Virus record (IMG/VR): IMGVR_UViG_3300028654_000001
Location: 186,001-250,000 of that record
DNA: 64,000 nt
Direction: 5' to 3' (one strand)
Made by a program: the position numbers and the translations under genes. The notes under the pieces are model-generated. The model was not told the DNA's origin. It worked only from the letters and a program-made list of their open reading frames with translations, and did not search any database. Positions within the stretch are counted from its first letter, which is position 1, and each line of letters starts with the position of its first letter. Below, piece by piece: positions 12,805 through 63,557 of this stretch.

Positions 12805-13557
12805 ATGCTAATTCTCGGAATAATGGCGATTATACTGGTACTAACCATCTGTGTATCCACCGTTGTTTATTTTCTTGGTAAATACCACAAGGCAAAGGAT
12901 GAGGCTGAGAAACAGAGGTTGAGAGCGGTATCCGCTGAGAATTCTGCTCGAGTGGCTGCTGGACAACGACCGATACCTGGGAGTGGGGTTGATGCTAGTG
13001 AATTAGCAGCTAGGTATAGAACACCTTCCCCACCTGAACCCCCTCCAAACAGAACTGAGTCAGGAAGAGTTTCAACCCGACCAAGGACACGGCCAAGATC
13101 TCGTCAAAGTATGGAGTCCTCTTTCACTGATCTATTCAGTAGCATGAGTGAGCAGATGACCCAAGTCTTTACTGGGGTGTCTCAAGCAGTGAGCGTGGTT
13201 AGTGAGCAAGCTACCCTCTCTGTAGCCATAGCTCGGGATGCTCAATCCCTATTGAATCTTGGGTTTGTTCAAGAAAATATTCAACTTGATCAAAGTCGGA
13301 GGTCTAACTTACAACACCTGAGTCTCATTCCTGGAGTATCCTCTCGAACGGTCACTGCACTACAGAGGCTTGAAACTTCGAATCGTATAGCTGAGCACCT
13401 TAACTGGGGGCGACTAGTAATCCAATTCATGCGTATGATTGACTCTGGTGGGATAACCTTCGAGAACGAGAACAAGGCTCCTGAACCAACTACTGCTAAG
13501 GAACCAGAGCCCGAGAAGCTACCTCCAACAAGGTTTGAGCGCGAGGATGTGATATGA
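12805..13557 (+). CDS. membrane-anchored hypothetical protein with C-terminal TRFER tag
   Basis: N-terminal TM helix; ends EKLPPTRFEREDVI; shares a domain (..NR..WG..MR..SG..) with the next gene. Confidence 0.8.
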   Translation: MLILGIMAIILVLTICVSTVVYFLGKYHKAKDEAEKQRLRAVSAENSARVAAGQRPIPGSGVDASELAARYRTPSPPEPPPNRTESGRVSTRPRTRPRSRQSMESSFTDLFSSMSEQMTQVFTGVSQAVSVVSEQATLSVAIARDAQSLLNLGFVQENIQLDQSRRSNLQHLSLIPGVSSRTVTALQRLETSNRIAEHLNWGRLVIQFMRMIDSGGITFENENKAPEPTTAKEPEPEKLPPTRFEREDVI

Positions 13558-14603
13558 GACCATTGTTTGATGGATGGGCCTTGCTCGCCTTCCTGTTCTG
13601 GATGGGTTTCTGCTGGCTCCTCTGCGTACGAAGATTGTTCTGGGGTTCCTTGGTAAGGAACTTCATCACAAGTGTCTTCTTTGCAATCTCTGGTATTGCA
13701 CTCCTCTTCCTAGCAACTAGGCCTTGGATTAACACGGCCCACATCCCTCATGGAGTCAACTTTCCGCCCCCGAAGTACAATAGTGAGATCCTAAATCTTG
13801 TAGGATCAATGTGCCTGACTCTATCCCTCGCCATCAGGGTAGTAATTCAACCGATCCCTACGCCATGCCCAAGAGTCTTGGTTTCGGATGAGAACATATC
13901 TCACCTTAGAGGTACTTGGCACATCATTGATGAGGTCAGGGTTCGAGTGGGGGACATCGTAATCCTTATAAATCAGAATCGAGCTGTAGATAACGGAGCT
14001 TGGGAAGTCAGAAAGCCACCCTGGCGCAGACCTCAATCAAATCAGAAGGGCTACCATTCCTTTGGTTCTTGGTTCATTGCTAATTGTGGTAACAAGTATG
14101 CTCATACTCTATGGGTGGGATCATTATGCCGCAATGACATCATCGGTGAGGGTGAACTCGAGTGGAAGCAACTCGATCTAAACAGCAGAATACGAACTTT
14201 CGTGAGCCTCGAGATACCCTGCAGTATTGGTGAGACCGCCAAGTTCCTTCTTCGAGTAGGAGTACTTCCATACCAGATTCGATGCAATCTCCAAGAAGAA
14301 GCAGTTAGGGACCTTTTGCAAGCAGGACACATATCACCAACCTCAGTAGGTATCCTACTGCACAAGCCTGACCCTAATCGGAACTCTACTGAGTGGGGTC
14401 CTCGAGTCAAAGCGGTGATGAGGTTGCTCATTCACTCGGGTGAGTTTGAATACCCCAAGGAAGCCTACGAGAGTGCAGTAACTAATGGGTTCGAGCACCG
14501 TATGACTGAGACTGAGGTGAGGGCTGACTTCGAGGTTCGAGTTAGGAACGAAACCCCAGAACCTCGAACCCCGACTAGGTTCGAAAGAGATGAAGTGATA
14601 TGA
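13554..14603 (+). CDS. multi-TM protein with tail-fibre-like domain and TRFER tag
   Basis: Three hydrophobic segments; VGDIVILINQNRAVDNGAW; ends PTRFERDEVI. Confidence 0.75.
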   Translation: MRPLFDGWALLAFLFWMGFCWLLCVRRLFWGSLVRNFITSVFFAISGIALLFLATRPWINTAHIPHGVNFPPPKYNSEILNLVGSMCLTLSLAIRVVIQPIPTPCPRVLVSDENISHLRGTWHIIDEVRVRVGDIVILINQNRAVDNGAWEVRKPPWRRPQSNQKGYHSFGSWFIANCGNKYAHTLWVGSLCRNDIIGEGELEWKQLDLNSRIRTFVSLEIPCSIGETAKFLLRVGVLPYQIRCNLQEEAVRDLLQAGHISPTSVGILLHKPDPNRNSTEWGPRVKAVMRLLIHSGEFEYPKEAYESAVTNGFEHRMTETEVRADFEVRVRNETPEPRTPTRFERDEVI

Positions 14604-18925: not shown

Positions 18926-19392
18926 TGCTTACAGTAGCTGACGTCATACCGACTGCAGAGGTTGGACAGTATTGGGTACATACCTTTCCCCTGTACATGT
19001 TTCGAGTTATAGCCGTTGATGTACAACAGTGGCAGTTCACCCTTGTCACTTGGATTGTCGGAGGGGTCCCTGAAGAGGATAGTTACTATATCGGGTATGA
19101 TACTTTTAAGGGATGCCGTAGACTTCACAACTCTGTAGTAATTGATCCCCATGCACTTAGCCTCAAGGAGATCCCTCGAACTGGAGACATTTTAGTTTTC
19201 CCAAGTGGGGAGTTGGTTTTCGTGGTTACCGATGGATCCCTAGTAACCCTGTACCATGATGGGGTTGTACCCAAAGACCCAGCTGTACTTTCCAAGCTTA
19301 AGCTATTTCAACGTGGCCCAGTCGACCCGAACCTAAAACCCACAACCAGATTCGAACGAGTGTTAGGTGATCATGCCCTTGACCCAGACTGA
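18922..19392 (+). CDS. hypothetical protein with TRFER tag
   Basis: Ends KPTTRFERVLGDHALDPD; paralogous to the next gene. Confidence 0.75.
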   Translation: MMLTVADVIPTAEVGQYWVHTFPLYMFRVIAVDVQQWQFTLVTWIVGGVPEEDSYYIGYDTFKGCRRLHNSVVIDPHALSLKEIPRTGDILVFPSGELVFVVTDGSLVTLYHDGVVPKDPAVLSKLKLFQRGPVDPNLKPTTRFERVLGDHALDPD

Positions 19393-19840: not shown

Positions 19841-20082
19841 CACCTGTAGTTATAAGTGGTACTGCCACCTACATGGATATACCCCAAAGAGGCGTTCACC
19901 ACCTTCTCCACACGCTGTGGACAAAAGCCGTAGGTACTGAGAATTACAACAAGAATGAGTGGAAGCAGCTGGCTGCTTACCTGTATGCTCTTATGGCCGA
20001 CCCTATGGCTTCCCAGAATATCATTGAAGTCGACAGGATACTTCAACCACCGACGCGGTTCGAGCGGGAGCCGGTGATCTAA
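19837..20082 (+). CDS. small protein with TRFER tag
   Basis: LHTLWTKAVG..Y.K.EW core; ends PPTRFEREPVI. Confidence 0.7.
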   Translation: MTPVVISGTATYMDIPQRGVHHLLHTLWTKAVGTENYNKNEWKQLAAYLYALMADPMASQNIIEVDRILQPPTRFEREPVI

Positions 20083-24443: not shown

Positions 24444-24767
24444 TTAGGAGTTATTGATCCGATCAAACCGAGTAGGTGGCTTATCCGTATACATAGTGGA
24501 CTGCGTGGTCCTTGCCACGTCTACGGAGGGTGGCTCTTCCTCCTCAACCTCTTCCTCCTCCACCTCAGGTTCCACTTGGTTGATGATCATAGGTTGTTGC
24601 GCAAAATTTGCGAGTAAGGCTTTCCACCCAAGAAGAATGTGGTTGGAGATAGTAGCTAGCAGATTGTAGGTAGATCCAATAACAACAATCACTATAAATG
24701 TAGCTAATCCTGGGTTGGCATGAACCCATATCCAGACCTGACTCATCACGGGGACAGTATACCCCAA
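24444..24767 (-). CDS. small membrane protein with TRFDR tag
   Basis: TM segment, acidic linker, ends KPPTRFDRINNS. Confidence 0.7.
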   Translation of the reverse strand: MGYTVPVMSQVWIWVHANPGLATFIVIVVIGSTYNLLATISNHILLGWKALLANFAQQPMIINQVEPEVEEEEVEEEEPPSVDVARTTQSTMYTDKPPTRFDRINNS

Positions 24768-32668: not shown

Positions 32669-33076
32669 GTGGCTTCCCCTCTTTTCAACTCTCAGAATCG
32701 CCCTCGGGCGGCTTCCCACTTAGCCGAGATTGACTTCGGCCGACTGGAAAAGTCTCGTAAAGAGAGCGGGAACGTCATCATAACCTACGAGACTTGCCCG
32801 GGTATTTTCCTACTGGCCTATGAGCAGGTTCATAATAGGAGCATCACATTTGCTCCGTTCCCAGTACCGAAGTACTGGGAACGACATGTGACCAGGGTTC
32901 ACTTACTGGTACCCGCTCCAGGCTCAATCAATCTCAAGAATGGGTCCCAAGTTACAACTATACCGGAGGATAGTGTAGCCCATGTTCTAGGGGCCATCCA
33001 GTATGTGCTAGAACAAGGTGGGTTCCAGGTAGTACTAGGTGCTCCAACTCGATTTGAACGAGCCGACGTGATTTAG
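32669..33076 (+). CDS. hypothetical protein with TRFER tag
   Basis: Ends APTRFERADVI; GGTGTA 10 nt upstream. Confidence 0.75.
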   Translation: MASPLFNSQNRPRAASHLAEIDFGRLEKSRKESGNVIITYETCPGIFLLAYEQVHNRSITFAPFPVPKYWERHVTRVHLLVPAPGSINLKNGSQVTTIPEDSVAHVLGAIQYVLEQGGFQVVLGAPTRFERADVI

Positions 33077-34847: not shown

Positions 34848-35597
34848 ATGCCAGCTGGAGCCTTTTGGCGCCTTCAGTACAGAGATGGCCTAGATCACAG
34901 AATTCAAGCTCGGGCTGATAGGCAAAGGTTTGCCCAAGACAGGAACGTCCTCACAGCCATTACTCGCTACCACGAGGGCGCTTTCGTTCTGGAGGTTCAG
35001 CTTGTCGATGATGCGGAGTCTACCTTCGATGGGAGTCTTCACGAGCTCTACAATCGACAGCAGTCCATTCGAAACCCACCGCCAGTGACTAGGACCATCT
35101 CCTCCTTAGCTAGATGGGGAAACACACCTGATTCAAATGGGATGGTCATAGATCCCCAAGTCAGGGAGAACATCATCAGTCAGTACATCCAAAGCTCAGG
35201 GGGTCGTCAACGATTGGCCCAGGCGATGGTAGCCCCTCTCCGAACACGACTAGACTACTCGGGGATGGCAAGACGGGTATTCATGGTTGAACCTCTCCAA
35301 GGAGGGGCCTTGCCCACCTACGACAAGGACATGGTCAGTGACTTCAACCCGCCCGACTGGGTCGACGCTGGCACGTGGGTCAAGAGTGACGATAAATACG
35401 CGATTATTGTGGCCACCGAGCCGAAGAATACCGAAAGCCTACCCTTCAACTCGGCTATAGTTGAATACCAGGTCTGGAGGGATTACGGGCCTCCAAAGAG
35501 GCTTGACGCGGAAACCTTCTGTAAGTACTGGTTACCATCCGAGACTCCAGCAGAGCCTAGAACCCGATTCGAACGAATTCTGATGGACGATGATTGA
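34848..35597 (+). CDS. mosaic protein: capsid-like segment + PxW domain + TRFER tag
   Basis: IISQYI..GRQRLAQAMVAPLR.RLDY...RRVFMVEPL..GALPTYDKD; ends PRTRFERILMDDD. Confidence 0.75.
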   Translation: MPAGAFWRLQYRDGLDHRIQARADRQRFAQDRNVLTAITRYHEGAFVLEVQLVDDAESTFDGSLHELYNRQQSIRNPPPVTRTISSLARWGNTPDSNGMVIDPQVRENIISQYIQSSGGRQRLAQAMVAPLRTRLDYSGMARRVFMVEPLQGGALPTYDKDMVSDFNPPDWVDAGTWVKSDDKYAIIVATEPKNTESLPFNSAIVEYQVWRDYGPPKRLDAETFCKYWLPSETPAEPRTRFERILMDDD

Positions 35598-35931: not shown

Positions 35932-36297
35932 ATGATGAGGGTTCTGATCATTGATTCATACGCCAAGGAAGAAGCAGACAAGGTAGTCAAGTTTGCGTTC
36001 CGCCCAGAGAATCTTTACCGTCCAGGGACTACCGCCAGGATCCCAGGAAATGTGAGGAAGCATATCCTTGTACTCGGGGACTACAAGATAGTCTTCTCGT
36101 TGACACGAGATCCTCAAACTGGTGAGGTTTTCAGACACCTCTCAATGTCGGTTCCAACTCTAGGGGCCTTCCCACACCCTGCAGCGATAACCGAGGTCAT
36201 CGACCTATTTGGATTCAAGGGGGGTTTGTGTAACTGTCAACTCGATGCAAATAGAGTTGATAATTGCATCACAGTAGCTCAGAACCTCGAATCTTAG
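35932..36297 (+). CDS. hypothetical protein
   Basis: VFS..RHLSMSVP..PHP pattern. Confidence 0.75.
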   Translation: MMRVLIIDSYAKEEADKVVKFAFRPENLYRPGTTARIPGNVRKHILVLGDYKIVFSLTRDPQTGEVFRHLSMSVPTLGAFPHPAAITEVIDLFGFKGGLCNCQLDANRVDNCITVAQNLES

Positions 36298-36680
36298 ATC
36301 ACATCCTCCCTCTCAAATCGAGTTGGAGGGAGTTTTTCTTCTACCACCTTCTCTCTTTTGCGACTTAGGACCTGTGGCTTTGGGGCTGGACGCCACTTAT
36401 CTAGGACATCTTTTAACCAACGAGAGATGGCTGACTTCGGGTTACCTTCACGTTCGAAGTGGATGTAGTTGTTCCCACCTGAAACTACCCGTATACCTGT
36501 TATTACGAACACAGGCATATCATAGGGTGTAGGGTTTTCGGGCAGGTTACGACAAACCCAATCAGGTCCTTCAGGGAATAGTGAGGTAATCTTGGATGGT
36601 GGAAGTGGGATTATCTTACTCCCCACTGCAACCCAACTATCATCCTTTGGAGCTTTCCAGGGGTCTTTGATCCGAGGCAT
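36294..36680 (-). CDS. PxW-domain protein with TRFER tag
   Basis: Ends EKLPPTRFEREDVI. Confidence 0.75.
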   Translation of the reverse strand: MPRIKDPWKAPKDDSWVAVGSKIIPLPPSKITSLFPEGPDWVCRNLPENPTPYDMPVFVITGIRVVSGGNNYIHFEREGNPKSAISRWLKDVLDKWRPAPKPQVLSRKREKVVEEKLPPTRFEREDVI

Positions 36681-36718
36681 TAGTTACCACTACACCGGTG
36701 TAAGTGGTAACTAATGCC
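36676..36718. promoter_or_regulatory. palindromic divergent promoter region (two back-to-back GGTGTA motifs)
   Basis: ggcattagttaccactacacc|ggtgtaagtggtaactaatgcc; perfect inverted repeat except one extra A. Confidence 0.7.
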
Positions 36719-37754
36719 AACGTGGAGGATTGAGTACCCTAGCCTACTTGCAAACGATAGAACACAGCTATACGCCGAGTGGGCTCTCATCCGAAACGAT
36801 CCTATGCTGACAAACTGTGAGACTACAGAAAGTCAGGACAACCCAATAACGATACTTACAGCCTCTTTCCTTGGGTTTGGCCCTGAGAACCCCGCGGTCT
36901 CAGAGATTATCCGAAGGCGAGGGATCCTACAACTTCCTGTCAACATCCAGATGCCGCTTATAGTATCCCGTCTGGCATCCAACAGTGAAGGTAGGTATGA
37001 GGTCGTTAGGGATGACCAACCCAGGTTCGGTGATGGCAGGCATTCGAGACCAGACAGGTTGCGAGGACACACCATTAACGCGATCATGTTTGATGTTGAG
37101 GCTTCGTTCAATAGTGGGATCCCACTACATCCTGGGGATCTTGTCGGAGTGGATCCCGCTACTGGATTAGTTATCCGTGAGGGTTTGTCCTTACTCTCGA
37201 CTCCTCCCGTTGGGATTGTAGCTGGGGTTGATATCGCAGTTGGTAGTGATCGATCTGAGATTACCCTGGCTCGGAGAAGGTTCCCAGAAGATGCTGATAG
37301 AGCTTTCAGGCAAGAGTTCATGGGGGAATTCCCAGAAGAAGGCTCCCCGGTTAGAACTGAGCTGACAGTCCTCGCTGCGGATCCCCCAAGAGCCCCCATT
37401 GGGTTCACGGTGCATGAGCGGATTGGAATGGCAGTCATCAACCCACGTACAATCGAACGGATTCAGGCAACTAGGGTTAACGTACCCCTATTCGAACTTG
37501 AGAATAACCCACAAATCAACCTGAGTGACATACGAGAACGAAGACTTGACCTGATCGAGCGTTCGGTGCACTCGATCCAAGAACAAGAGGATCGGGAGAT
37601 CTTGGCCGCACTCGAGGGTACCTTCACGAACCAGCCGAGGCCTCCAGTGACCCCGACCCCAGTGGTGGCACCTGAACCTGTGGAGGAGAACTTCATCCGT
37701 AGAACCCGCTTCGAGCGTATCCTTGATGATACAGATGAACTGTACCCACTCTAA
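36714..37754 (+). CDS. mosaic protein with terminase-like and capsid-like fragments + TRFER tag
   Basis: LRGHTINAIMFD, GVDIAVGSDRS, FRQEFMGEF, RTELTVL, PLFELENNPQI..I.ERR.DLIER; ends RTRFERILDDTDELYPL. Confidence 0.75.
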   Translation: MPTWRIEYPSLLANDRTQLYAEWALIRNDPMLTNCETTESQDNPITILTASFLGFGPENPAVSEIIRRRGILQLPVNIQMPLIVSRLASNSEGRYEVVRDDQPRFGDGRHSRPDRLRGHTINAIMFDVEASFNSGIPLHPGDLVGVDPATGLVIREGLSLLSTPPVGIVAGVDIAVGSDRSEITLARRRFPEDADRAFRQEFMGEFPEEGSPVRTELTVLAADPPRAPIGFTVHERIGMAVINPRTIERIQATRVNVPLFELENNPQINLSDIRERRLDLIERSVHSIQEQEDREILAALEGTFTNQPRPPVTPTPVVAPEPVEENFIRRTRFERILDDTDELYPL

Positions 37755-38735: not shown

Positions 38736-39611
38736 ATGCCACTTCCAGATTGGGCTATCCTTGGATCCGTTATCTACCCACGGCCGCGTGATTCATATAT
38801 TAGAATCATAAGGGAATCTGGGGCTATCATAGTATATGCACTTCGAGAAGAGGTGCAGTTGAATCAGAACCATGTGGTATTCAGCGTAGACTCTGAAACT
38901 CTAGAGCATAACTGGATGCCACTTTCAGAAGCTGCACCCTTGTTTTCTGACTCAACTTATGGGCCAATGCCCTCCTGGTTTACAATTGGCTCGCGAATTA
39001 TTCAAAACCACAACAATCTGACTTACATAATCCTCTCTTTTGACCCTATCCGCTGGTCAATGACTGCAACATTAGAAGACGAAGTGAGTCCAACCAACTT
39101 CACGGTGACAAACTTCATTAGACATTGGAGACCCGCTAGCTCAATCACAGAGCAGAAACCCACTACGAATGTCACTAATATCGTTCAAGGTAGGGTTCAA
39201 GTTGCCCCAGATTGGTTGTATCCGGGGAAGTTCCTTAGAAGGAAAGTGAATCCAAATCACGTGTTTGTGGTCTCAAGCCTAGACCCAAGACGTTTCGTTG
39301 CAGTACTGACTAGACTGGATAGCCTAAGGCCGATGGTTCTTGGATCGATCTTTGAAGAAGCTGATTATTGCCGTATCGATGAACAGTTCACTCAAGTCGA
39401 CAGTACAGGGAGCCCAGCAGCTGAGTATACGTGCAAGAAGTGCGGTGAAACCGGCGAGAGAGACTACGACGCTGAGGAGAGACGAGCCAGCATCGACACT
39501 GTTAGGGCTTATACCTGCAAGAGGGGTCACACCTGGTACTTCGTGGCGGGTACCGATCAAGATGGTAAGCCAGCCAATCCAAGTAGATTTGAGCGTGATA
39601 TCGGCATTTAG
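38736..39611 (+). CDS. triple PxW-domain protein with Zn ribbon and SRFER tag
   Basis: LPDW/MPSW/APDW repeats, CKKC..CKRGH, ends PSRFERDIGI. Confidence 0.8.
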   Translation: MPLPDWAILGSVIYPRPRDSYIRIIRESGAIIVYALREEVQLNQNHVVFSVDSETLEHNWMPLSEAAPLFSDSTYGPMPSWFTIGSRIIQNHNNLTYIILSFDPIRWSMTATLEDEVSPTNFTVTNFIRHWRPASSITEQKPTTNVTNIVQGRVQVAPDWLYPGKFLRRKVNPNHVFVVSSLDPRRFVAVLTRLDSLRPMVLGSIFEEADYCRIDEQFTQVDSTGSPAAEYTCKKCGETGERDYDAEERRASIDTVRAYTCKRGHTWYFVAGTDQDGKPANPSRFERDIGI

Positions 39612-41142: not shown

Positions 41143-41718
41143 GTGGGTTGTTCACTCCTCTTTAGAAGAGCAATACTAGTTGAGGTAGCCCCTTGGTTAC
41201 ACAGTAGTTGCCAGCTTGTGGTTGCTTATGGCGGTGGTCAAATCACTGTCCATAGGTATGACCCCTACAGCATGATTGAAGAGGATTCCAGGATAGTAGG
41301 GAGATCTATCAACCTCCCTATTCGTCACTACTACTACGTTGACACTACAGAACAGGGGTACTACTTCTATGTTGACATTCAGGGTAACATACTCGAGTTC
41401 GATAACTCAACGTTTTTTGACTTAGCTCGAATGAGCAATGACCCAAGTCTAGGGTATGGTCACGAACCGATAATAGGAGTCCTTAGATCAAACCCTGTTA
41501 GGCCAACGAGGTTCGAGCGAATCCTTAGAGAGAATGAAATCTGGGAAGATTACCGCCCCACCCCAAAGCCAATCCAAGAAACCAGGAAAACTGAAGTCAC
41601 TGAAGCTGATCTAGCAGCTATCTTCAACAAGCCCCAAAAGTTGATTGCAGATGCTCCTAAACCCATGGACATTGATATCCTCAAGTGCATGGAAGAGGTA
41701 TTAGGTAAGACCTCTTAG
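41143..41718 (+). CDS. hypothetical protein with internal TRFER tag
   Basis: PVRPTRFERILRE. Confidence 0.7.
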   Translation: MGCSLLFRRAILVEVAPWLHSSCQLVVAYGGGQITVHRYDPYSMIEEDSRIVGRSINLPIRHYYYVDTTEQGYYFYVDIQGNILEFDNSTFFDLARMSNDPSLGYGHEPIIGVLRSNPVRPTRFERILRENEIWEDYRPTPKPIQETRKTEVTEADLAAIFNKPQKLIADAPKPMDIDILKCMEEVLGKTS

Positions 41719-46087: not shown

Positions 46088-46382
46088 TAAGCCTCTGACT
46101 GAACGTGACTATGAGGTCCTTGGTGAACTCGTGCATCAGTCCAAGGACGGTGAGTGGTTGCGCCCAATGGATGTAGGTGGTTTTGACGGATCTCACCACT
46201 CAGCTACCCTGAACAATCTTGTCAGCCACGGTATGGCTGAACTAACGTGGTTCGGAAAACCTTGGCAGCCTCGCTTACACAAAAGGTACAGGGTAACCAA
46301 AAATGGAGAAGCTCTGTACCAAGAGTACAAGTTGAAGAAGCAAGCGGCTAGATCAGATCCTCTTCATCTAGTAAAGCGTTGA
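46080..46382 (+). CDS. putative winged-helix protein
   Basis: RPMDVGG...SHHS.TL..LV..G..YRVT..G. Confidence 0.65.
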   Translation: MGNKPLTERDYEVLGELVHQSKDGEWLRPMDVGGFDGSHHSATLNNLVSHGMAELTWFGKPWQPRLHKRYRVTKNGEALYQEYKLKKQAARSDPLHLVKR

Positions 46383-46842
46383 TTCTATCAAAGCGAGTGG
46401 GTTGAACACTTGGGTTAACCCCATTAAATAGTGGGGTTTGGGTTCCTAGATTAGAGAAAACCCATCGAACTGGAGTACTCGGGTTTACCAGGATAGAGGT
46501 GCCAAATACGATGAAAGTAACCTCAAAGTTTACCCTCAGGATCTCTAGAACGAGATTGTCCCAACCTTTACCCTCTTTAATTATGGTAAAGTCAAAGGCA
46601 AAGGCGGTCCCTCTTTTTGAGTCTAGATATGAACGAGCCTCATACTCACCTGGTGCATAGATTCTAATCGGTTTTGATTCCTTGATACCACTTACGCGCC
46701 ACTTGCGGGTGGGGTTGCGATCAACCCTGACGATAGATGGAGTCCAGGTCGGTTCAGGCCCTCTCCCTAATATGATCTGTGGAGTGTTCCACTTGATCTT
46801 ATCAACCCAGACATCTGGACGGGATAGGTCAATTTGAATCAA
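46348..46842 (-). CDS. hypothetical protein with TRFDR tag
   Basis: Ends QPTRFDRINALLDEEDLI. Confidence 0.75.
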   Translation of the reverse strand: MIQIDLSRPDVWVDKIKWNTPQIILGRGPEPTWTPSIVRVDRNPTRKWRVSGIKESKPIRIYAPGEYEARSYLDSKRGTAFAFDFTIIKEGKGWDNLVLEILRVNFEVTFIVFGTSILVNPSTPVRWVFSNLGTQTPLFNGVNPSVQPTRFDRINALLDEEDLI

Positions 46843-53138: not shown

Positions 53139-54278
53139 TTAGGAAGCGGTCTTGTACCGCTTCCCCTCTCGGATATCGGTTGAGCTGATATCAAAGTCAC
53201 ATTGAAGTCTATGACACCTGAGGTTTGGTGGACAGGGAAAGTCCATCAAGGTCTTCATAACCCCGTCCAATCGACGGTCAGCTATAGTCAGACCTGTACA
53301 AGTTTCTGTGAAGATCTTGGCCTGCTCCTCGATAGTGATCCCCCATCGTTTAGCATCAAAAAGAGTTTCTAAGCTATCGGCACCCAAGAGGATCTCTATT
53401 CCAGGGAGATGTTTTGCCTTGTCCACATAGTAAGGGGCGCCCCAAGTTATGTAGACATTCCTACCCTGCAGCATCTTGGCTCGCTTGAGGATGTCCCAAG
53501 GCTTGAGAGGATTCTTGTGCGGGGGCTCGGCTTCCAGGGTGAAGGCAACAGGGCCTCCTACCTGGTCAATGTACCCGTCAGCCAGACCAAAGTGCCCAAA
53601 GTGTGGTGGGTTGAAAGATCCCGGAAGCAAGGCCCCGCGCCTCCGATACTCATCCTTGGGAAACTCCAGGAGTCTCTTGCCTGTACTCGAGAAGTAAGGT
53701 CGGCGACGAAGTCGTTCTTCAGACAGGACTTCAGCCCTACCATTGCGGAACTCTTCGATGCACCCCTCAGGTAGGTCTAGGCCAGTGATGAAAGTATTGG
53801 TGGCATCCTTGATGGAACTGATCAGGAGAGCGTTACAGATCTGACCGTCCAGGTGCCTTCTTTCGGCTCCAACTCCCTTAACCAGCTTGACATAGGTCAA
53901 GGTAGCTTTGTACTCTTGGAAGGTTGCCACGAAGATTCGGTGGTCTCCCTTATGGGCTGTAGTGCTCGCTGTGACCGCACAGACTCCGATCCCAATAGCT
54001 GGGGCCCCTTCATATTGGTACGCTCTGTAGAAGGCATCCATAGCGAAGTCCATGGCCGTCCCTTCGTTGGCATAACCGTCTGGAGAGAACCCAAGAAAGT
54101 TGTCAATGTCCTCCTTGGCATACGGCATATGACAACCAACTAGTACATCTGAGACCCCCGGTACATCCCAAATGTGACCAAAAGTCCCGGCACCCGCCAT
54201 ACCGGCAATGCAGAGCCGTACTTTCTTGGTTGGAAGGAAGTCTACTGAATCAAGTGATTGTAGTTGGGGTAGTGGCAT
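53139..54278 (-). CDS. CinA-like N-domain fused to a nucleotidyl (NMN adenylyl)transferase
   Basis: PGSFNPPHFGH (HxGH), LGAD, DISSTDIR; N-terminal GAG..VPG.S..PY. Confidence 0.75.
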   Translation of the reverse strand: MPLPQLQSLDSVDFLPTKKVRLCIAGMAGAGTFGHIWDVPGVSDVLVGCHMPYAKEDIDNFLGFSPDGYANEGTAMDFAMDAFYRAYQYEGAPAIGIGVCAVTASTTAHKGDHRIFVATFQEYKATLTYVKLVKGVGAERRHLDGQICNALLISSIKDATNTFITGLDLPEGCIEEFRNGRAEVLSEERLRRRPYFSSTGKRLLEFPKDEYRRRGALLPGSFNPPHFGHFGLADGYIDQVGGPVAFTLEAEPPHKNPLKPWDILKRAKMLQGRNVYITWGAPYYVDKAKHLPGIEILLGADSLETLFDAKRWGITIEEQAKIFTETCTGLTIADRRLDGVMKTLMDFPCPPNLRCHRLQCDFDISSTDIREGKRYKTAS

Positions 54279-54282
54279 ACTT

Positions 54283-55326
54283 TCAGCTTCCTGCTGCTAC
54301 GAGTTTAGGTTCAGCATTCTTCCTCAAAAGACTGCAAAAAGAACCTGGTACCTCAAATGGCCTGAAGGTAGGCTTCCCGACGAGGCTCTTGAGCAGGTTG
54401 TCAAAAGCCTCGTGAACATCATCTGCCTTGGAGGGCCTCATTCTTCTCTCTGGGTTCAGACAGATCTTGAGTAGGTTTTGGATCTCTCGGGGTACCGCAT
54501 CAGGCATCTCGTTGGTTTTAACGTCTCCGCCGAGAATAGCAACCATACACTTGACGGCCATATAGATGTCGGTCGCTTCCGAAGCTTCCTTTTTTTCTGG
54601 TACCTCAGGCGGGTAGTAGTCAGCATACCTAGTGATGAGTACGCGAATTCTGGTCATACCAGAGTAGATTGAATCAGCGGGATCAGGCTCGCCAACGGGT
54701 CTACTCCCATGAGGAGTGTCCTCTAGTGCCCGCTCTCTAGTAGAGGCCGAGTAGCACCAATCGATGAGCTTGGCGCCGTGGTTCTGACCAAACAACAGGA
54801 TGTGAGGGGGGAGAACTGCCCCATGCAGGAAACCATTCTTGTGCGCCCACCATAGGCCAACCAGGGTTCTCTTGAACATCCAAGCCATGTCCCGATAGTC
54901 AATCCCTTTTGGGTAGGCTCTAAGAACATCATCAATGGTGAAGTAGTCGGGTATCAATGAAAGGATGTTCCCCCTCTGTCCCCGAGAGTCAAACCCTCCG
55001 TAGCTAGTTGGATAGTAGAGGTTGAACTTGGACCAATCCGGATCCGTTGATGTTAGTCCATTCAGGACTTGGCTCTCCCTGATCAATAAATCGTTGTTAC
55101 TTGGATCCGAGCAGATCCTAACGATGACCGGAACCTCAACCACATCATCATCGTCATCCTCTAGAATGTGATCAAAGCGAGTCCGAGGCCCTGCGTGCTT
55201 GACAGGAGTTTTTGGAGCTGGGTTCTCATCCTTGTAAGTCCCCTGGTAAAGGTTGCAGAGATCACCCTCCATCAACCGAGCCCCAAACGTCACGCTCTTC
55301 TTGTCACCAAGAGCTAGCGTCGGCAT
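54283..55326 (-). CDS. atypical Ser/Thr kinase-like protein with an inserted TRFDH tag
   Basis: N.DL..RE, AWMFKR.L..L..AH..G.LHGAVLPPHIL, LIDWCYS, YPPE, DIYM. Confidence 0.8.
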   Translation of the reverse strand: MPTLALGDKKSVTFGARLMEGDLCNLYQGTYKDENPAPKTPVKHAGPRTRFDHILEDDDDDVVEVPVIVRICSDPSNNDLLIRESQVLNGLTSTDPDWSKFNLYYPTSYGGFDSRGQRGNILSLIPDYFTIDDVLRAYPKGIDYRDMAWMFKRTLVGLWWAHKNGFLHGAVLPPHILLFGQNHGAKLIDWCYSASTRERALEDTPHGSRPVGEPDPADSIYSGMTRIRVLITRYADYYPPEVPEKKEASEATDIYMAVKCMVAILGGDVKTNEMPDAVPREIQNLLKICLNPERRMRPSKADDVHEAFDNLLKSLVGKPTFRPFEVPGSFCSLLRKNAEPKLVAAGS

Positions 55327-56693
55327 GTTAGTTCTTTGTCATCAGCGGTTGACCCATACGAGAAAATAGTGACAGGAGCTCTCATAGTTTTAGTTATTCC
55401 AGATATTAGACGATCTGTATTCTTAAGGGTAGTGAAAACTGGCTCAGCATAGATATCTAAGAAGTGAGAGTAGGGGATCCCATCCTTATCGAAGTACTTT
55501 TTGAGGTATTGGTAGGCTTCCCAAGTATTTGCGTCGAGGAGTATCTTGTAGAAAGGCTTGGTCGAACAGTCGTACCGTAAGCAGACTTTTTGTGGGCCGT
55601 GGATGTGGTCGAGGTGATTGAGGGCTATCTCATCCAACCCACCAAGAACTTCGCGGGCGTATCTGGCCATAACGAAGTCGTAGTAACCTACCCGGAAGGC
55701 ACCTTGCCACTCTCCTTGAGTGTTATGCTCTACTAATCTGGCATCTGGGTCCTCCGATGGGAAGGGTCCAGTCCCGTGCCGCGTAAGATAGGTTCGAGTA
55801 ACCCACATCCTGGTCACCTTTCCAGAGAACCCCTTGAGTAGTTCTAGGGCGTTGTGGAAAGTGCAGTTGCTCCAAGTAGAGTGAGGGTGGAACCCGTACT
55901 CCTCGTCCAGAAGTACTCCTTGAGCCCCCTCGAATAGGGTGACCCCTGATTCGAGAGCCTTGGTTAGGTAGTCTTGGTTGACTACCCTGACCCCTGCCTT
56001 GTCGATTAGGTGGTAGTAGTTCTCCATGAAGTACTCGACCAAAGTTCTGTCCCTGAGCATGTCATATTCGAACATGAGCCTTCGAGTCATATCCACGGAT
56101 AACTCAACGGGTAGGTCGTCCAAAAGGGGGGTCGTCTCCTCCAACTTTCTCTGACGAATAACTTCAAGTTTGTCCTTGATGACTGATGGCTTTCGGAAGT
56201 CCCTCATCCGAATAGCACCCTCCGGATCTTGTATTGAGTCTGAGACAGTTTCCCCAATACCCATGCCACATGACCCGTGGCGCCCAAACCCAACACTCTT
56301 ACAGGTAAAGAGAGCCTCTCGGTGCAGCTCTCGAAGGCGGTTAGTCGCCATGTGGAAAGGAGTGGTGACTAGGGCCATCTCATCAATGGCCAACCTTTGG
56401 TAGGCGTCGGTCACCCCAAGAGTTTCAAGGTGCTCCTCTTCGTATTGGAGAAGAAGCGGGTTCACCACCATGTAACGGCTAAGGTAAGTCTCCGCGCCGG
56501 CAAGAGTACCCGAACTAAACTGGGAAAAACAATGAGTTTTACCGTCTCTTAGGACTACATGATGGGCAGCTTGAGCACCACCATTAAAACGAACTACAGT
56601 GTGAGACCCCTCCCTACGAGTAAGGTAGTCTACTACACTACCCTTCCCTTCGTCCCCAAACCCCAATCCAACAACGATCCATACCTTAGCCAT
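55314..56693 (-). CDS. purA: adenylosuccinate synthetase-like protein
   Basis: GLGFGDEGKG, RFNGGAQAAH, HGSCGMGIG, FEGAQG.LLD, TRHGTGPFP, FRVG. Confidence 0.85.
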   Translation of the reverse strand: MAKVWIVVGLGFGDEGKGSVVDYLTRREGSHTVVRFNGGAQAAHHVVLRDGKTHCFSQFSSGTLAGAETYLSRYMVVNPLLLQYEEEHLETLGVTDAYQRLAIDEMALVTTPFHMATNRLRELHREALFTCKSVGFGRHGSCGMGIGETVSDSIQDPEGAIRMRDFRKPSVIKDKLEVIRQRKLEETTPLLDDLPVELSVDMTRRLMFEYDMLRDRTLVEYFMENYYHLIDKAGVRVVNQDYLTKALESGVTLFEGAQGVLLDEEYGFHPHSTWSNCTFHNALELLKGFSGKVTRMWVTRTYLTRHGTGPFPSEDPDARLVEHNTQGEWQGAFRVGYYDFVMARYAREVLGGLDEIALNHLDHIHGPQKVCLRYDCSTKPFYKILLDANTWEAYQYLKKYFDKDGIPYSHFLDIYAEPVFTTLKNTDRLISGITKTMRAPVTIFSYGSTADDKELTCRR

Positions 56694-56726
56694 GGAATTT
56701 CACCGAAGTGCTTCAAATAAATGAGC

Positions 56727-56761
56727 AGTAGTTCGATATAAAGAGAAATACCGAACTACTG
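56727..56761. terminator. intergenic hairpin between the vWA and purA-like genes
   Basis: cagtagttcg...cgaactactg inverted repeat. Confidence 0.5.
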
Positions 56762-56775
56762 TTATGTTATGCAAA

Positions 56776-57744
56776 TTACAGTCTTTGGATCTTCGGGGGT
56801 TTTCCTGGGTCCACTCCCTTGGCCTTGGCCAAGTCCACCAATGAGGATGCTATCTTGTTCGAGACCAATTGAGAGGTTCCGGTAGCCTCGAGAGCTGCCT
56901 TGGCCCCATCAACGGTTACGACCTTCTCACAGACACCCATCGTGGTTGCAATGAGCTCACAGATGTCCTCCTCATCTTGAAGGAGCAGGACATTCTCTGG
57001 CCCAAGTAACTTCTTCCAAGCATCCTGGATCTTGGTATCACGACCATGGTTGGTGTGCTGGGGTATGATGTAGAAGACGTTGTACCGTTGCTGACACTCC
57101 TTGATGATGTCAGCAGTTGGTATCTCAGCTACTTCCATTGTCTCTCCGAAGAGAGTTTTGACCGACTCACGTCTTACCGCCGGATGCGCGTACTCATCAC
57201 CAATGATGAATAAGTAGCCCTTTTTCTGTCGTTTCTCCCAACAGTCGATCTTGGTATGTCGAGCGAAGAAGTAGATGGCATTCTGGTAGGACTCACCGTT
57301 GTTACCCCCACCGTTACCCTCGAGCCAGAAGGACTCGAGGTCTTCATCCATCCGGTTGTCACTCTCGAATTGACCAAACTGAGCTGAGCCTCGGTCTGAG
57401 AACTCATCCCCGACAGCCCCAAACAAGATCTGAGTATCTGGAATACCAACTTTGCCAATTAGGCCGTGTAGCTTAGGGAGTTTCCCGTGAGCTACACGAG
57501 GTACCGACTCCATTGACCCAGTGACATCCAGGATAATCCCAACTGCAATTGAGTTTGGGTGCTCCAATGAGTCACAAGACTCGCGTATTGCCACCCCAAG
57601 TGGATTCAGACGTGGGTGAACATTCTGCTGGTCCCGTGGTTTTGACGCCTGTGCAGCGTGGTGTGCAAAGGTTGGCTGACCAGTCTGTTGACGAGTCGTG
57701 CTCCTTTGTTGATAGAAATCATGACTCCAACTTCCGCCTCCCAT
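56776..57744 (-). CDS. vWA-domain protein
   Basis: MIDAS ILDVTGSM, AVGD, QFESD, EGNGGG..ESY, LFIIGDE. Confidence 0.85.
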   Translation of the reverse strand: MGGGSWSHDFYQQRSTTRQQTGQPTFAHHAAQASKPRDQQNVHPRLNPLGVAIRESCDSLEHPNSIAVGIILDVTGSMESVPRVAHGKLPKLHGLIGKVGIPDTQILFGAVGDEFSDRGSAQFGQFESDNRMDEDLESFWLEGNGGGNNGESYQNAIYFFARHTKIDCWEKRQKKGYLFIIGDEYAHPAVRRESVKTLFGETMEVAEIPTADIIKECQQRYNVFYIIPQHTNHGRDTKIQDAWKKLLGPENVLLLQDEEDICELIATTMGVCEKVVTVDGAKAALEATGTSQLVSNKIASSLVDLAKAKGVDPGKPPKIQRL

Positions 57745-57800: not shown

Positions 57801-58046
57801 CTAATCTTCATCGTCTCTAAGAATCCGATCGAACCGAGTACTCCCAAGAAGCGTTGTACTCGGTTTACTAGACACCGATGGCACTTCATCGGTGTCTAGA
57901 ATTCGATCGAATCGAGTTGGTCGAGAAGTACTTTGGGTATCTGGTACTTGACTCCGAATAGGCTCTACACCCGCTTGACTTTTAGGCTCTTGTTTTCTAC
58001 GAGACATAAGAGTGTAGAAGTCATCTGTCCAAAAACCGCCGCCCAT
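57801..58046 (-). CDS. mini-protein: copy of the vWA N-terminus + two TRFDR tags
   Basis: MGGGFWTDDFY vs MGGGSWSHDFY; PTRFDRIL and STRFDRIL. Confidence 0.8.
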   Translation of the reverse strand: MGGGFWTDDFYTLMSRRKQEPKSQAGVEPIRSQVPDTQSTSRPTRFDRILDTDEVPSVSSKPSTTLLGSTRFDRILRDDED

Positions 58047-58053
58047 AAGCCTC

Positions 58054-59442
58054 TTAGACCCGTGAAAGATTCTTCTCTGAATTCTTTCGAACTTCTGAGA
58101 ACTTCATGTCACGTATGAGCTTGCCGTTTTCGAAGACAACCTGAAGCACGTCTGACTTGGTTGACCCAGCTGGAACCGACTTGAACTCCCCACCTTCCAT
58201 AATGAGGCTCAGTCGCCCCGACTTTGAAACCTTGCCTGGATCAGTAACAGGATCTTTGAACACGGGCACGGTTGCCCCTGTATCAGTTGTGATCTCCGAG
58301 CACTTCAGAGCCCACTTCTGGGTATCGCGATCCAACTGCTGAAGTAAGCCGCCGCCCATACCGAAGGCAATGTTCGAGGTTGAGTACTTGTGAGCCGTTA
58401 TTGTGGCAAGGATCTCACGAAGTGAGTCAATGTTGATGCCGTCACCTTGAATGAGCTTGAAGTAGGGGGGAAGAACCTTGAACCCACGCATGTTCCTGGT
58501 CATCCCAAGCTTGTTCTCAAGTGTCTGTAGGCACCGAAGAACCATTGCGGGTGGATCCCCTGAATCAGGTCGGATCACCAAGCAACCACCAGAATTCTTT
58601 ACCTGATCAAGGAGCTCTCCGCACCACATGTTCTCGATAACATTGAAGATATCGTAACTATCCGACACACAGGCAACGACCTTGTCCTTTTTCAGGAACT
58701 GAGTGATCATGTTGCGGTAGGCGAGGAGCTCTCGTTCACGGCCCCACGAAGTAATGCTCGAATGCTCAGCCGCTGGGATTGAGAATCCGGCCATGGGCTC
58801 ACCATAGAAAGCCCTAGCAAACATGATCCCTTCGAGGGTATCGGTACCCCTGAAGTTCACGAGATGGCTCATACCTCCGATGCCAGCCGATTCATGTGAG
58901 CTGACCCCTCGGGCTCCGAAGTCGTGCAGCTTGAAGTAGATCTCGGCCCAAGGATCGTTGGCTGTCTCCAATAGGTGCTCGAGAATGACTCGCTTGCAGT
59001 AGTAGGACTGGGTGGCCACCGTACTCGGGTACCATGTGCGAACAATCTGAGCTTCTAACCAACTGGCTGCCCAGAAGGTATCAGCGCCGCCGGTGCTCTC
59101 CAATGATAGGACAATGTTCCGGGTTGGAACCTCCAGACCCTCAGGCACCGCCTTGATCCTCACAGGCCAGTACCCACCGTTGGCCACTATTTTCCCAAAA
59201 CCTTCTGCATTGAATGGCTCCCCATGAGCCTCCAGAACCTCCTTGGCTTCGACAACATCCGCGTCCGTGATGGGTGTCGTAAGGTATTCCTTGATCAGGT
59301 ACTGCAGTCCAAAGAAAATTGTAGATCCGAACTTACCACCCCGTGACTCCATGTAATCGTACATCCCAGTGGTGCTCGGTGGGTAAGTCAGCCAATGGGC
59401 TGACTTATAACTGTCTGTATTTAATATTGGATTGAATCTCAT
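58054..59442 (-). CDS. nadV: nicotinamide phosphoribosyltransferase (NAMPT)
   Basis: TDSYK, FFGLQY, WYP.TVAT, LHDFGARG, PAAEHS, VSDSYD, IRPDSGDP, QGDG, FGMGG.LLQ, KDP.TD.GK.SK.GR. Confidence 0.95.
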   Translation of the reverse strand: MRFNPILNTDSYKSAHWLTYPPSTTGMYDYMESRGGKFGSTIFFGLQYLIKEYLTTPITDADVVEAKEVLEAHGEPFNAEGFGKIVANGGYWPVRIKAVPEGLEVPTRNIVLSLESTGGADTFWAASWLEAQIVRTWYPSTVATQSYYCKRVILEHLLETANDPWAEIYFKLHDFGARGVSSHESAGIGGMSHLVNFRGTDTLEGIMFARAFYGEPMAGFSIPAAEHSSITSWGRERELLAYRNMITQFLKKDKVVACVSDSYDIFNVIENMWCGELLDQVKNSGGCLVIRPDSGDPPAMVLRCLQTLENKLGMTRNMRGFKVLPPYFKLIQGDGINIDSLREILATITAHKYSTSNIAFGMGGGLLQQLDRDTQKWALKCSEITTDTGATVPVFKDPVTDPGKVSKSGRLSLIMEGGEFKSVPAGSTKSDVLQVVFENGKLIRDMKFSEVRKNSEKNLSRV

Positions 59443-60656: not shown

Positions 60657-61118
60657 ATGCCAGTGCAAAGGCGAGGGCGTGCGGTTGACTTTGTAAAGGA
60701 AATCCTGAACCACGAGCACAGAGACTGGGTTCGATCCGATGACCCAAGCACTTCCAGTTGGGGCTTCGAGTGTCGGATTTGCAAATCCCGCTACCTAATA
60801 GCCATCGAAGCCTTCCGATACCAAGGGGGCGACCGCTACTCGAATGCTCTCCGAGATTGTGCAATGGATCCGAGAAAGGATCCATTGGAGACAGTTCTTG
60901 GGTTCGATTGTATCGCCTGTCATACGACTGAGGGCGTCAAACTGGAACCTTCAAGAACTCAATATGGTACAACGTATCCTCGAACGAGGTTCGAACGAAT
61001 ACTTGACCCTGAGCCAGAAGATCCTAACATCGACATCCCTCTCTGCCGAAGTTGCGCAGAGGATCATCATTCGTACTGGGATGAAATGTGGCAGATGGTT
61101 CGATATGATCAGATGTGA
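60657..61118 (+). CDS. Zn-finger protein with internal TRFER tag
   Basis: CRIC, CIAC, CRSC..H; YPRTRFERIL; GGTGTA 10 nt upstream. Confidence 0.75.
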   Translation: MPVQRRGRAVDFVKEILNHEHRDWVRSDDPSTSSWGFECRICKSRYLIAIEAFRYQGGDRYSNALRDCAMDPRKDPLETVLGFDCIACHTTEGVKLEPSRTQYGTTYPRTRFERILDPEPEDPNIDIPLCRSCAEDHHSYWDEMWQMVRYDQM

Positions 61119-63493: not shown

Positions 63494-63557
63494 GGTCCAG
63501 AATTACACCGGAAGTTGGGTACCTAGTTTACTAAACCCCTTATCGGAGTGTTCAAGC

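Follow-up and report, generated by a model that had tools for sequence, protein, structure and literature searches.

A predicted helical peptide shared by many proteins of a huge phage lies in a surface loop of an atypical kinase-shaped protein whose bacterial relatives carry a J domain

Why would a kinase-shaped protein of a 512-kb phage carry, in the middle of its N-lobe, a short peptide that also ends about 58 other proteins of the same phage? The question arose in a 64,000-nucleotide window (positions 186,001 to 250,000 of IMG/VR record IMGVR_UViG_3300028654_000001). A preliminary description, made from the sequence alone, noted a kinase-like ORF with altered catalytic residues and an inserted tag, and proposed that the tag Thr, in a pThr-x-x-Asp context preferred by some FHA domains, forms a phospho-switch together with a CX5R phosphatase encoded in the window. 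Our analysis confirms what was observed at this locus. The reading placed on it is only partly supported: the kinase fold, the N-lobe insert, the altered residues and the absence of the insert from cellular homologues all held, whereas the phospho-Thr/FHA switch is not supported.

The ORF is open, ATG-started and 347 aa long, and its start overlaps the stop of the upstream PurA-like gene. The features of the protein and its immediate neighborhood are as follows (coordinates are those of the window).

54283..55326 (-), kinase-fold protein, 347 aa (homologue P0001 in our set), with 113 homologues
55141..55227 (-), b2-b3 loop insert (residues 34-62) that carries the tag
55162..55188 (-), tag core PRTRFDHIL (P47-L55), in which T49 precedes a predicted helix at residues 50-57
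55144..55161 (-), acidic tail EDDDDD of the tag
55117..55119 (-), R70 at the VAIK-lysine position
54802..54825 (-), catalytic-loop equivalent HGAVLPPH (residues 168-175) in place of HRDxKxxN
54754..54762 (-), DWC (residues 189-191) in place of DFG, resembling the CK2 DWG
55314..56693 (-), PurA-like (adenylosuccinate-synthetase-like) gene
56776..57744 (-), vWA-like protein with MIDAS motif DVTGS and invariant N-terminus MG..W....Y
57801..58046 (-), 81-aa protein with a vWA-like N-terminus (MGGGFW..DFY) and two tags (57897-57917 and 57819-57839), with counterparts at loci L003 (two tags) and L004 (one tag)

The AF2 model of the protein (pLDDT 91.6, pTM 0.88) has a bilobal kinase fold, with Foldseek matches at probability 1.00 to Aurora A, FGFR2, KIT and MST kinases (TM 0.52-0.75), and the PHROG family "kinase" was matched at 1.6e-21. 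The Pfam Pkinase profile (PF00069), by contrast, scored below its gathering cut-off for this copy (22.4 bits against 31.7; E 8.9e-5), although many homologues carry a precomputed PF00069 hit. In the model, strand b2 spans residues 24-33, a helix spans 50-57 and b3 spans 63-72, so that the segment between EGDLCNLY (residues 20-27) and VIVRIC (residues 67-72) interrupts the N-lobe. The spacing from the b1/b2 turn to helix aC has a median of 52 residues in loop-tagged family members and 28 in J-domain members, indicating a true insert of about 24 residues. Within this insert, residues 46-58 are 95% identical across 13 close relatives, against 53% and 48% for the flanking linkers, consistent with purifying selection on the tag.

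The altered catalytic motifs are a conserved family signature and not decay of this copy. When aligned with CK2, HGAVLPPH falls on HRDVKPGN and DWC on the DWG of IDWG. Among 105 aligned family members, H168 was found in 104, G169 in 105, P173 in 105 and H175 in 104, position 170 (Ala here) was never Asp, and L172 takes the place of the catalytic-loop Lys and H175 that of Asn in 104 of 105; D189 was found in 102 and W190 in 105, and position 191 was Ser in 53 and Cys in 37. Only the substitution at the VAIK position is rare: this column is Lys in 102 members and Arg in 3, including this copy. The aC glutamate is conserved (E84: 91 Glu and 13 Asp; the assignment to aC follows from a helix at residues 75-91 in the model), as are the APE glutamate (E241, 103/105) and its arginine partner (R297, 104/105). 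There is no GxGxxG loop, the sequence being EGDLCNLYQG, of which only G21-D22 are conserved in the family. The protein also has the remainder of the signature by which we define this family, H-G-A-x-L-P-x-H ... H-G ... D-W-[SC] followed by a C-terminal VGKPxFRPF motif.

The tag itself is a proteome-wide peptide. TRF[DE]R occurs 59 times in open frames of the 512,571-bp genome against 0.45 expected from composition, and synonymous codons vary freely between copies, which led us to reject a DNA-level repeat: selection acts on the peptide and not on the DNA. We distinguished 45 class-A and 15 class-B copies: 39 of the 45 class-A copies lie 9-16 residues from the stop, while all 15 class-B copies lie exactly 9 from it and end at the carboxy terminus (..V-I-stop). 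Acidic residues dominate positions 9-10 of class-A tags. The 62 motif-bearing ORFs comprise 36 singletons and 8 small paralogue groups, so the bearers are mostly unrelated. The other tags in the window are listed here.

13528..13554 (+), class-B TRFEREDVI at the C-terminus of a protein with an N-terminal TM-like segment (12805-13557)
14574..14600 (+), class-B TRFERDEVI at the C-terminus of a protein with three TM-like segments (13554-14603)
19345..19365 (+), class-A TRFERVL (ORF 18922-19392)
20053..20079 (+), class-B TRFEREPVI (ORF 19837-20082)
24453..24473 (-), TRFDRIN (ORF 24444-24767, with a TM-like segment)
33047..33073 (+), class-B TRFERADVI (ORF 32669-33076)
35562..35582 (+), class-A TRFERIL (ORF 34848-35597)
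36297..36323 (-), class-B TRFEREDVI (ORF 36294-36680)
37704..37724 (+), class-A TRFERIL (ORF 36714-37754)
39582..39608 (+), class-B SRFERDIGI (ORF 38736-39611)
41506..41526 (+), class-A TRFERIL, internal, 70 aa from the end (ORF 41143-41718)
46378..46398 (-), TRFDRIN (ORF 46348-46842)
60984..61004 (+), class-A TRFERIL, 44 aa from the end of a Cys-rich protein (60657-61118) whose orthologue in a 40%-distant phage is tagged too

Pfam searches of ten tagged window proteins returned no family, and PHROG searches returned only short, weak, partial matches of three tagged proteins to head-related families. A megablast of 8 kb against GenBank phages returned nothing.

Within the kinase family, the position of the tag is mobile: it sits in the b2-b3 loop in 36 members, in the activation segment in 5 and at the N-terminus in 4. 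It also co-varies with the C-terminal tags of other proteins in the same phage, as seen in phage genomes G001 to G004: TRFDRIL in G003 and G004 (14 against 0 and 34 against 1 control hits), TNAWEA in G001 and TxWDxLL in G002. The tag is nearly exclusive with an N-terminal J domain, which is absent from this protein (no HPD motif or J domain was detected): we counted 44 strict tags among non-J members but 1 among 38 J members, the exception being homologue P0055, which has both, so the two are not strictly interchangeable. The preliminary description had made the presence of the insert in cellular homologues a test of its reading, and of the 73 bacterial loci where the gene could be resolved, 64 have an HPD motif at the expected place upstream of the core and none has a tag in the N-terminal or loop regions. 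The "serine/threonine kinase" of mycobacteriophages (Bixzunavirus, cluster C), such as Dietrick gp249, belongs to the same family (27% identity over residues 70-338, with HGA and DWC) and is likewise J-type, with an N-terminal J-like domain with HPD and no tag; as far as we could find, its function rests on annotation only.

The kinase-like gene belongs to a conserved triad with the vWA-like and PurA-like genes. The PurA-like gene was linked to the kinase in 17 of 18 phage loci and 76 of 80 bacterial loci, and all three genes were present in 17 of 18 and 75 of 80, respectively. The PurA-like product matches PF00709 (8e-58), but it reaches only 161 bits against the 402-bit cut-off for true PurA and 39 against 300 for PurZ. 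The vWA-like protein is 46% identical to the Oscillochloris gene next to the J-kinase and 37% identical to Dietrick gp250, which together with a PurA-like gene lies in the neighborhood of gp249, and its AF2 model (pLDDT 89) has an integrin beta-I/vWA fold. NCBIfam and PADLOC have no model for the vWA-like protein and gave only generic kinase similarities for the kinase (MAD6, MkoA, PD-T4-6).

We therefore consider it somewhat more likely than not that PRTRFDHIL-EDDDDD is not part of the kinase core but a portable docking peptide on a flexible loop of about 29 residues. In this view, it forms a two-turn amphipathic helix with Thr as N-cap, Phe3/Ile6/Leu7 as the hydrophobic face, two Arg and an acidic tail, occupies whichever exposed site is available in the kinase family, and replaces the J domain of the cellular and some phage homologues. 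It would tether the kinase-like subunit, and through it the triad, to the same receptor or hub that recognizes all tagged phage proteins, analogous to the way the J domain tethers the cellular homologues to Hsp70. Since the family keeps its nucleotide-binding residues (Lys70, replaced by Arg in this copy, Glu84 and Asp189) and the structural core, but has HGAxLPxH where kinases have HRDxKxxN, it is not a canonical phosphotransferase but either a non-canonical enzyme or a nucleotide-binding scaffold. The fold (as modelled), the insert, the family signature, the proteome-wide motif, its positional mobility and co-variation, the near exclusivity of tag and J domain, and the triad all come directly from the analysis, while the docking function, the N-cap role of Thr, the J-domain analogy, and any phosphotransfer activity or phosphorylation of the tag are matters of inference. 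The searches identified no receptor. A complex prediction combining the vWA-like protein, the kinase core (62-337) and residues 30-81 of the double-tag protein gave an ipSAE of 0.00, which is not evidence either way. The pLDDT of the tag helix (73-82) is higher than expected for a free loop, and the helix may be free or may pack on the kinase.

The phospho-switch appears unlikely. Position 1 is Thr in 56, Ser in 1, Asn in 1 and Glu in 2 of 60 copies in this phage, which is tighter than an N-cap alone requires, position 4 is always acidic, this copy has the Thr and Asp of the FHA-ligand motif (T49, D52), and a PTP/DSP-like CX5R phosphatase-like ORF is encoded 24 kb away (30596-31156, minus strand). 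However, no FHA domain (PF00498) was found in the complete phage genome, though a host FHA domain cannot be excluded; position 4 is Glu in 38 and Asp in only 7 of 45 class-A tags; and Asn replaces Thr in several related lineages (NRYER, NRFDH and NAWE; homologues P0014, P0018, P0025, P0026 and P0044). Furthermore, no family member among the 105 has the catalytic Asp, R2, F3 and R5 are as invariant as T1, and the modelled helix begins right after T49, so that T-x-x-D/E reads as a helix N-cap or capping box, although phosphorylation of the Thr cannot be excluded. It is also unlikely, if marginally less so, that the kinase-like protein is itself the reader or writer of the tags, with its own copy serving as an autoinhibitory pseudosubstrate or autophosphorylation site. 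S/T-x-x-D/E followed by acidic residues is the acidophilic CK2 consensus, CK2 alpha chains dominate the PDB sequence matches (second-best and most later hits, the best being an unnamed CMGC-family Ser/Thr kinase) and share the DWG-type motif, and every tag-type kinase carries one copy close to the catalytic cleft region. The co-variation of the kinase tag with the other tags, the moderately high pLDDT of its helix and the Asn at position 1 of some kinase copies would also suit this reading, and conservation of Lys, Glu and the DFG-Asp leaves some phosphotransfer-like chemistry possible. Yet the catalytic Asp, Lys and Asn equivalents are missing family-wide, Lys70 is Arg here, and J-type relatives share the same core without a tag.

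A degron or timing signal read by a host or phage unfoldase or protease, which would subject the kinase to the same turnover, is the least likely alternative: it would fit the strong C-terminal preference, the exact terminal position of class B and the many small, unrelated, probably early bearers, but copies in internal loops of a folded kinase domain and at N-termini are unusual for terminal degrons, and the motif is conserved in the kinase over 35-45% sequence divergence. Delivery to a phage-built compartment, membrane site or the virion is a special case of docking with a structural shell as the receptor, and is likewise doubtful. A short amphipathic helix on a flexible Pro/Arg-rich linker at the ends of tens of unrelated proteins, portable and position-independent, recalls microcompartment encapsulation peptides, encapsulin cargo-loading peptides and LxxLL/FxxLF-type helical motifs, and the weak head-related PHROG matches point the same way. 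However, the sequence is different and far more strictly conserved (T-R-F-E-R invariant), there are two length classes, one ending exactly at the carboxy terminus, no shell protein was identified, and the TM-like segments of three tagged proteins fit packaging poorly.

Comparison with J-domain co-chaperones (DnaJ/Hsp40) rests on the placement of two small appendages that connect a protein to a partner, since the tag is a 7-9-residue helix plus an acidic tail, not a four-helix J domain, and nothing shows that it binds Hsp70. No Hsp70 was found in the phage genome by family search, nor Hsp70 signature strings within 6 kb of 80 bacterial homologues. A phage J-protein is a candidate receptor: its full length is conserved only in the TRFER-tag phages G003 and G004, and only its N-terminal part in G002 and in a further genome, G005, but this pattern is confounded by relatedness, the protein has no Pfam domain beyond the J domain, and an Atlas search gave no lead. 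A more speculative and improbable possibility, though one of considerable interest if true, is that the T-R-F-E-R-I-L peptide is a viral address label that does in trans what a J domain does in cis, coupling about 60 phage proteins, including the kinase-fold subunit of the triad, to one hub, which could be the host Hsp70 machinery through a phage J-protein or a phage-built assembly. The triad would then be an undescribed nucleotide-dependent system, in which a PurA-like ligase and a non-canonical kinase-fold enzyme act with a MIDAS-bearing vWA protein whose N-terminal Met-Gly is invariant, and which huge phages would have captured from bacteria and rewired by swapping the J domain for their own tag.

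The triad of a vWA protein, a divergent adenylosuccinate-synthetase paralogue and an Asp-less kinase fold occurs in at least 413 bacterial genomes, yet full-text searches for this combination, for the motif, for jumbo-phage C-terminal motifs and for J-domain pseudokinases found nothing relevant in the literature we could search. A single short peptide on about 60 unrelated proteins of one virus implies one receptor that organizes a tenth of its proteome, and finding it would open a new piece of huge-phage cell biology, whether localization, chaperoning or timed turnover. The kinase-like protein is the oldest and most widely conserved bearer of the peptide and the only bearer found with a recognizable fold or family match. 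The J domain that its bacterial relatives carry in place of the tag gives the only functional hint so far, and a tractable entry point, because the J-type homologue exists in culturable Actinomadura, Streptomyces and mycobacteriophages.

The open reading frame encoding this kinase-like protein is intact, and the observation made in the preliminary description, that a tag peptide interrupts the N-lobe of a kinase-like protein with altered canonical residues, holds. The features of the protein that matter here are as follows.

54283-55326, minus strand: kinase-like ORF (protein P0001), 347 residues, with an ATG that overlaps the stop codon of the upstream gene
55162-55188, within this ORF: residues P47-L55, PRTRFDHIL, followed by EDDDDD
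54637-54747, within this ORF: residues 194-230, a second, clade-specific insert after DWC in the activation segment
54346-54414, within this ORF: residues 305-327, a conserved C-terminal motif of the family

The strings EGDLCNLY (residues 20-27) and VIVRIC (67-72) flank the tag, as the preliminary description stated. An AlphaFold2 model built on 105 homologues is confident (mean pLDDT 91.6, pTM 0.88) and places strand b2 at residues 24-33, a short helix at 50-57, and strand b3 at 63-72. Foldseek comparison of the predicted structure finds protein kinases throughout, with Aurora A, FGFR2, KIT, and MST at probability 1.00, and a PHROGs search calls the protein "kinase" at 1.6e-21, although the Pfam Pkinase match stays below its cut-off (22.4 against 31.7 bits). 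The distance from the b1/b2 turn to helix aC has a median of 52 residues in members with the tag in this loop and 28 in members without; the segment is therefore a real insert in the N-lobe.

The altered catalytic motifs are a signature of the family. A word-indexed search returned 113 homologues, many on contigs of 430-660 kb, and in the 105-sequence alignment H168, G169, P173, H175, H183, D189, and W190 are invariant or nearly so. Position 170, corresponding to the HRD aspartate, is Ala in 95 sequences, Ser in 7, Gly in 2, and Asn in 1, and is never Asp. Alignment with CK2 alpha sets HGAVLPPH opposite HRDVKPGN and IDWC opposite IDWG; the catalytic Asp, the catalytic-loop Lys, and the Asn are therefore all replaced in every member, while the nucleotide-binding Lys70 (102/105), Glu84, and the DFG-type Asp189 are kept, as are the APE Glu and its Arg partner. 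This pattern suggests a conserved, non-canonical active site or nucleotide-binding site rather than a decayed gene, and only the Lys70-to-Arg change is peculiar to this copy and two others. The C-terminal motif of the family, F-D-x-L-L-x-x-x-V-G-K-P-x-F-R-P-F-x-x-P, contains an F-D-x-L-L helix that resembles the tag core.

The tag itself is proteome-wide. The window lies in a complete 512,571-bp virus record with direct terminal repeats (genome G000), in whose open frames TRF[DE]R occurs 59 times against 0.45 expected from composition, and since synonymous codons differ freely between copies, selection is on the peptide. We counted 45 class-A copies, (P)-T-R-F-E-R-I-L followed by acidic residues, of which 39 lie 9-16 residues from the stop, and 15 class-B copies, P-T-R-F-E-R-[ED]-[DP]-V-I, which always end exactly at the stop. 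Many copies are preceded by Y-x-G-P-R-P. Other than the kinase copy, those in the window are at 13528, 14574, 19345, 20053, 24473, 33047, 35562, 36323, 37704, 39582, 41506, 46398, 57839, 57917, and 60984. The bearers are mostly unrelated small proteins clustered at genome positions 10-290 kb: among the 62 ORFs that carry the motif, 36 are singletons and the rest fall into 8 small paralogue groups, and none of ten tested has a Pfam family. Three have TM-like segments, and two adjacent proteins with such segments (12805-13557 and 13554-14603, plus strand) end in class-B tags, so that the tag would also sit on cytoplasmic tails of membrane proteins. The kinase copy is the extreme outlier in position, 299 residues from the C-terminus. 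T1, R2, F3, [ED]4, and R5 are all nearly invariant, so Thr is not singled out.

Nearly all kinase-family homologues without a J domain carry a tag-like peptide, [TSN]-x-[FYW]-[DE]-x-[ILV]-[LMI] followed by acidic residues, but its site varies: the b2-b3 loop in 36, an insert after DW[SC] in the activation segment in 5, and the N-terminus before b1 in 4. The second insert of P0001, at the activation-segment site where other members carry their real tag, begins S-T-R-E-R-A-L-E-D and is tag-like but lacks the aromatic residue. Within the 13 closest relatives the tag (residues 46-58) is 95% identical, while its linkers are about 50% identical and the kinase core 68-81%. Furthermore, the variant in the kinase matches the C-terminal tags of other proteins in the same phage: TRFDRIL in the related phage genomes G003 (whose kinase is 40% identical; 14 DNA-pattern hits against 0 in the control) and G004 (34 against 1), TNAWEA in G001, and T-x-W-D-x-L-L in G002. 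Copy number ranges from a handful to about 60, and the bearers conserved between G000 and G003 are the kinase and one Cys-rich protein (60657-61118). Position-independence, strong purifying selection, and co-variation are what one expects of a docking peptide read by a common, co-evolving partner.

Occurrence of the tag is nearly exclusive with that of an N-terminal J domain. Among the metagenomic homologues, 44 of 67 non-J members have a strict tag and a further 12 a relaxed one, whereas only 1 of 38 members with an N-terminal J domain (HPD motif) has one. The only family member found with both, the metagenomic homologue P0055, carries its strict tag (TVFDHLL) in the activation-segment insert and is a possible evolutionary intermediate. 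A scan of one genome per prokaryotic species found relatives in 413 genomes, including Actinomadura, Spirillospora, Streptomyces, Chloroflexota, and Labilithrix. In the best 80 loci the gene could be resolved in 73: in 64 of these HPD lies 157-205 residues upstream of the HGA core, 2 have HPD only at other distances, and 7 show none (some of these are cut by contig ends), while none has a tag in the N-terminal or loop regions. The closest annotated relative, the "serine/threonine kinase" of Bixzunavirus mycobacteriophages, also has the J-like HPD domain. Comparison with bacterial homologues, which had been set beforehand as a check on the insert, therefore comes out in favor of the preliminary description: the insert is specific to phages. 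It also gives a new clue, because the tag stands where relatives have an Hsp70-recruiting domain. Searches of the phage genome found no Hsp70 and two J-domain proteins. One is a 466-aa protein (63465-64000, plus strand, continuing to G000 position 250697; 1297-2697 of locus L001) with HPD at about residue 96 and a C-terminal 330 residues of unknown fold. Its full length is conserved in the TRFER-tag phages G003 and G004, but only the N-terminal ~200 residues in the phage genomes G002 and G005. The other is a weak J-like ORF at genome position ~507 kb.

The kinase-like gene belongs to a conserved triad of unknown function, which in the window has the following surroundings.

55314-57744, minus strand: stretch of the triad, with the vWA-like ORF at 56776-57744
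57801-58046, minus strand: small ORF just upstream of the vWA-like gene
58054-59442 and 53139-54278, minus strand: NAMPT (Pfam NAPRTase 9e-51 plus NAMPT_N) and an NMNAT-like cytidylyltransferase with a CinA-like N-terminal half, flanking the triad

In bacteria from three phyla the J-kinase gene is followed by two conserved genes. The product of the first is 46% identical to that of window ORF 56776-57744 and 37% identical to gp250 of the mycobacteriophage Dietrick; it is predicted to fold as an integrin-beta-I/vWA domain with a DxTGS MIDAS motif and has an invariant N-terminus, M-G-x-x-x-W-x-x-x-x-Y. The second is a divergent adenylosuccinate-synthetase paralogue, which hits Pfam PF00709 but scores 161 bits against the 402-bit cut-off for PurA and 39 against 300 for PurZ. 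All three genes are present in 17 of 18 phage loci and 75 of 80 bacterial loci, in the order vWA, PurA-like, kinase in most tag-type phages and kinase, vWA, PurA-like in J-type phages and cells. This combination of a vWA-like protein, a PurA-like ligase, and an Asp-less kinase fold occurs in at least 413 bacterial genomes (Actinomycetota, Chloroflexota, Myxococcota, and others), as well as in Bixzunavirus mycobacteriophages and huge phages (loci L033-L112 and L032, in addition to the window). Neither PADLOC nor NCBIfam has models for the vWA-like partner, the triad is not in either, and a literature search found no paper on the combination.

The small ORF at 57801-58046 starts with the same M-G-x-x-x-[WY] motif as the vWA-like protein, with counterparts in four other loci (L003:7277-7558, L004:5322-5522, L008:7039-7173, and L014:1283-1528). 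In the TRFER-tag phages it consists of that N-terminus plus one or two tags, as if it were an adaptor or competitor. The Met-Gly of the vWA-like protein is invariant in 46 sequences. One could speculate that the N-terminal glycine amine is a substrate of the PurA-like ligase. NAMPT lies next to the triad in seven of the related phage loci (L003, L004, and L008-L012), which suggests an NAD-salvage link.

The preliminary description read the tag as fitting the phospho-Thr docking pattern of some FHA domains and, with a CX5R phosphatase also in the window, as a possible phospho-switch, and this interpretation is only partly supported: kinase fold, insert, altered residues, and phage-specificity hold, but the FHA phospho-switch does not. 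No FHA domain was found in the phage genome, Asn replaces Thr in several lineages and once in this phage, Glu rather than Asp is usual at +3, and the family lacks the catalytic Asp. In addition, the modeled helix starts directly after T49, and S/T/N-x-x-D/E is the classical helix capping box, so that a capping role for Thr may be inferred. On the other hand, Thr is nearly invariant here, the motif also fits the CK2 consensus, and a 186-aa PTP/DSP-like phosphatase is encoded at 30596-31156 (minus strand; VHCTHGHDRTG, Pfam Y_phosphatase3 6e-8, with weaker matches to DSPc and polymorphic-toxin DSP-PTPase families), although no link between it and the tag was shown. Phosphorylation cannot be excluded, but nothing requires it.

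Alternatively, and in the reading we prefer, the tag is a portable amphipathic docking helix, with Phe3, Ile6, and Leu7 on one face, two Arg, and an acidic tail. In this view it would tether the kinase-like subunit of the triad, in place of the J domain, to the same, as yet unidentified, receptor as the other tagged proteins. While the insert, the family signature, the distribution of the tag, and its near-exclusivity with the J domain rest on sequence comparison and the fold on a confident prediction, the docking function and the tethering are inferred. One complex prediction, combining the vWA-like protein, the kinase core, and the double-tag protein, gave no answer; the phage J-protein remains a candidate receptor, and a cis-docked pseudosubstrate remains a live rival. 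What is present in this phage is an atypical kinase-fold protein of an undescribed conserved triad, carrying the proteome-wide address peptide of the phage where its bacterial relatives carry a J domain.
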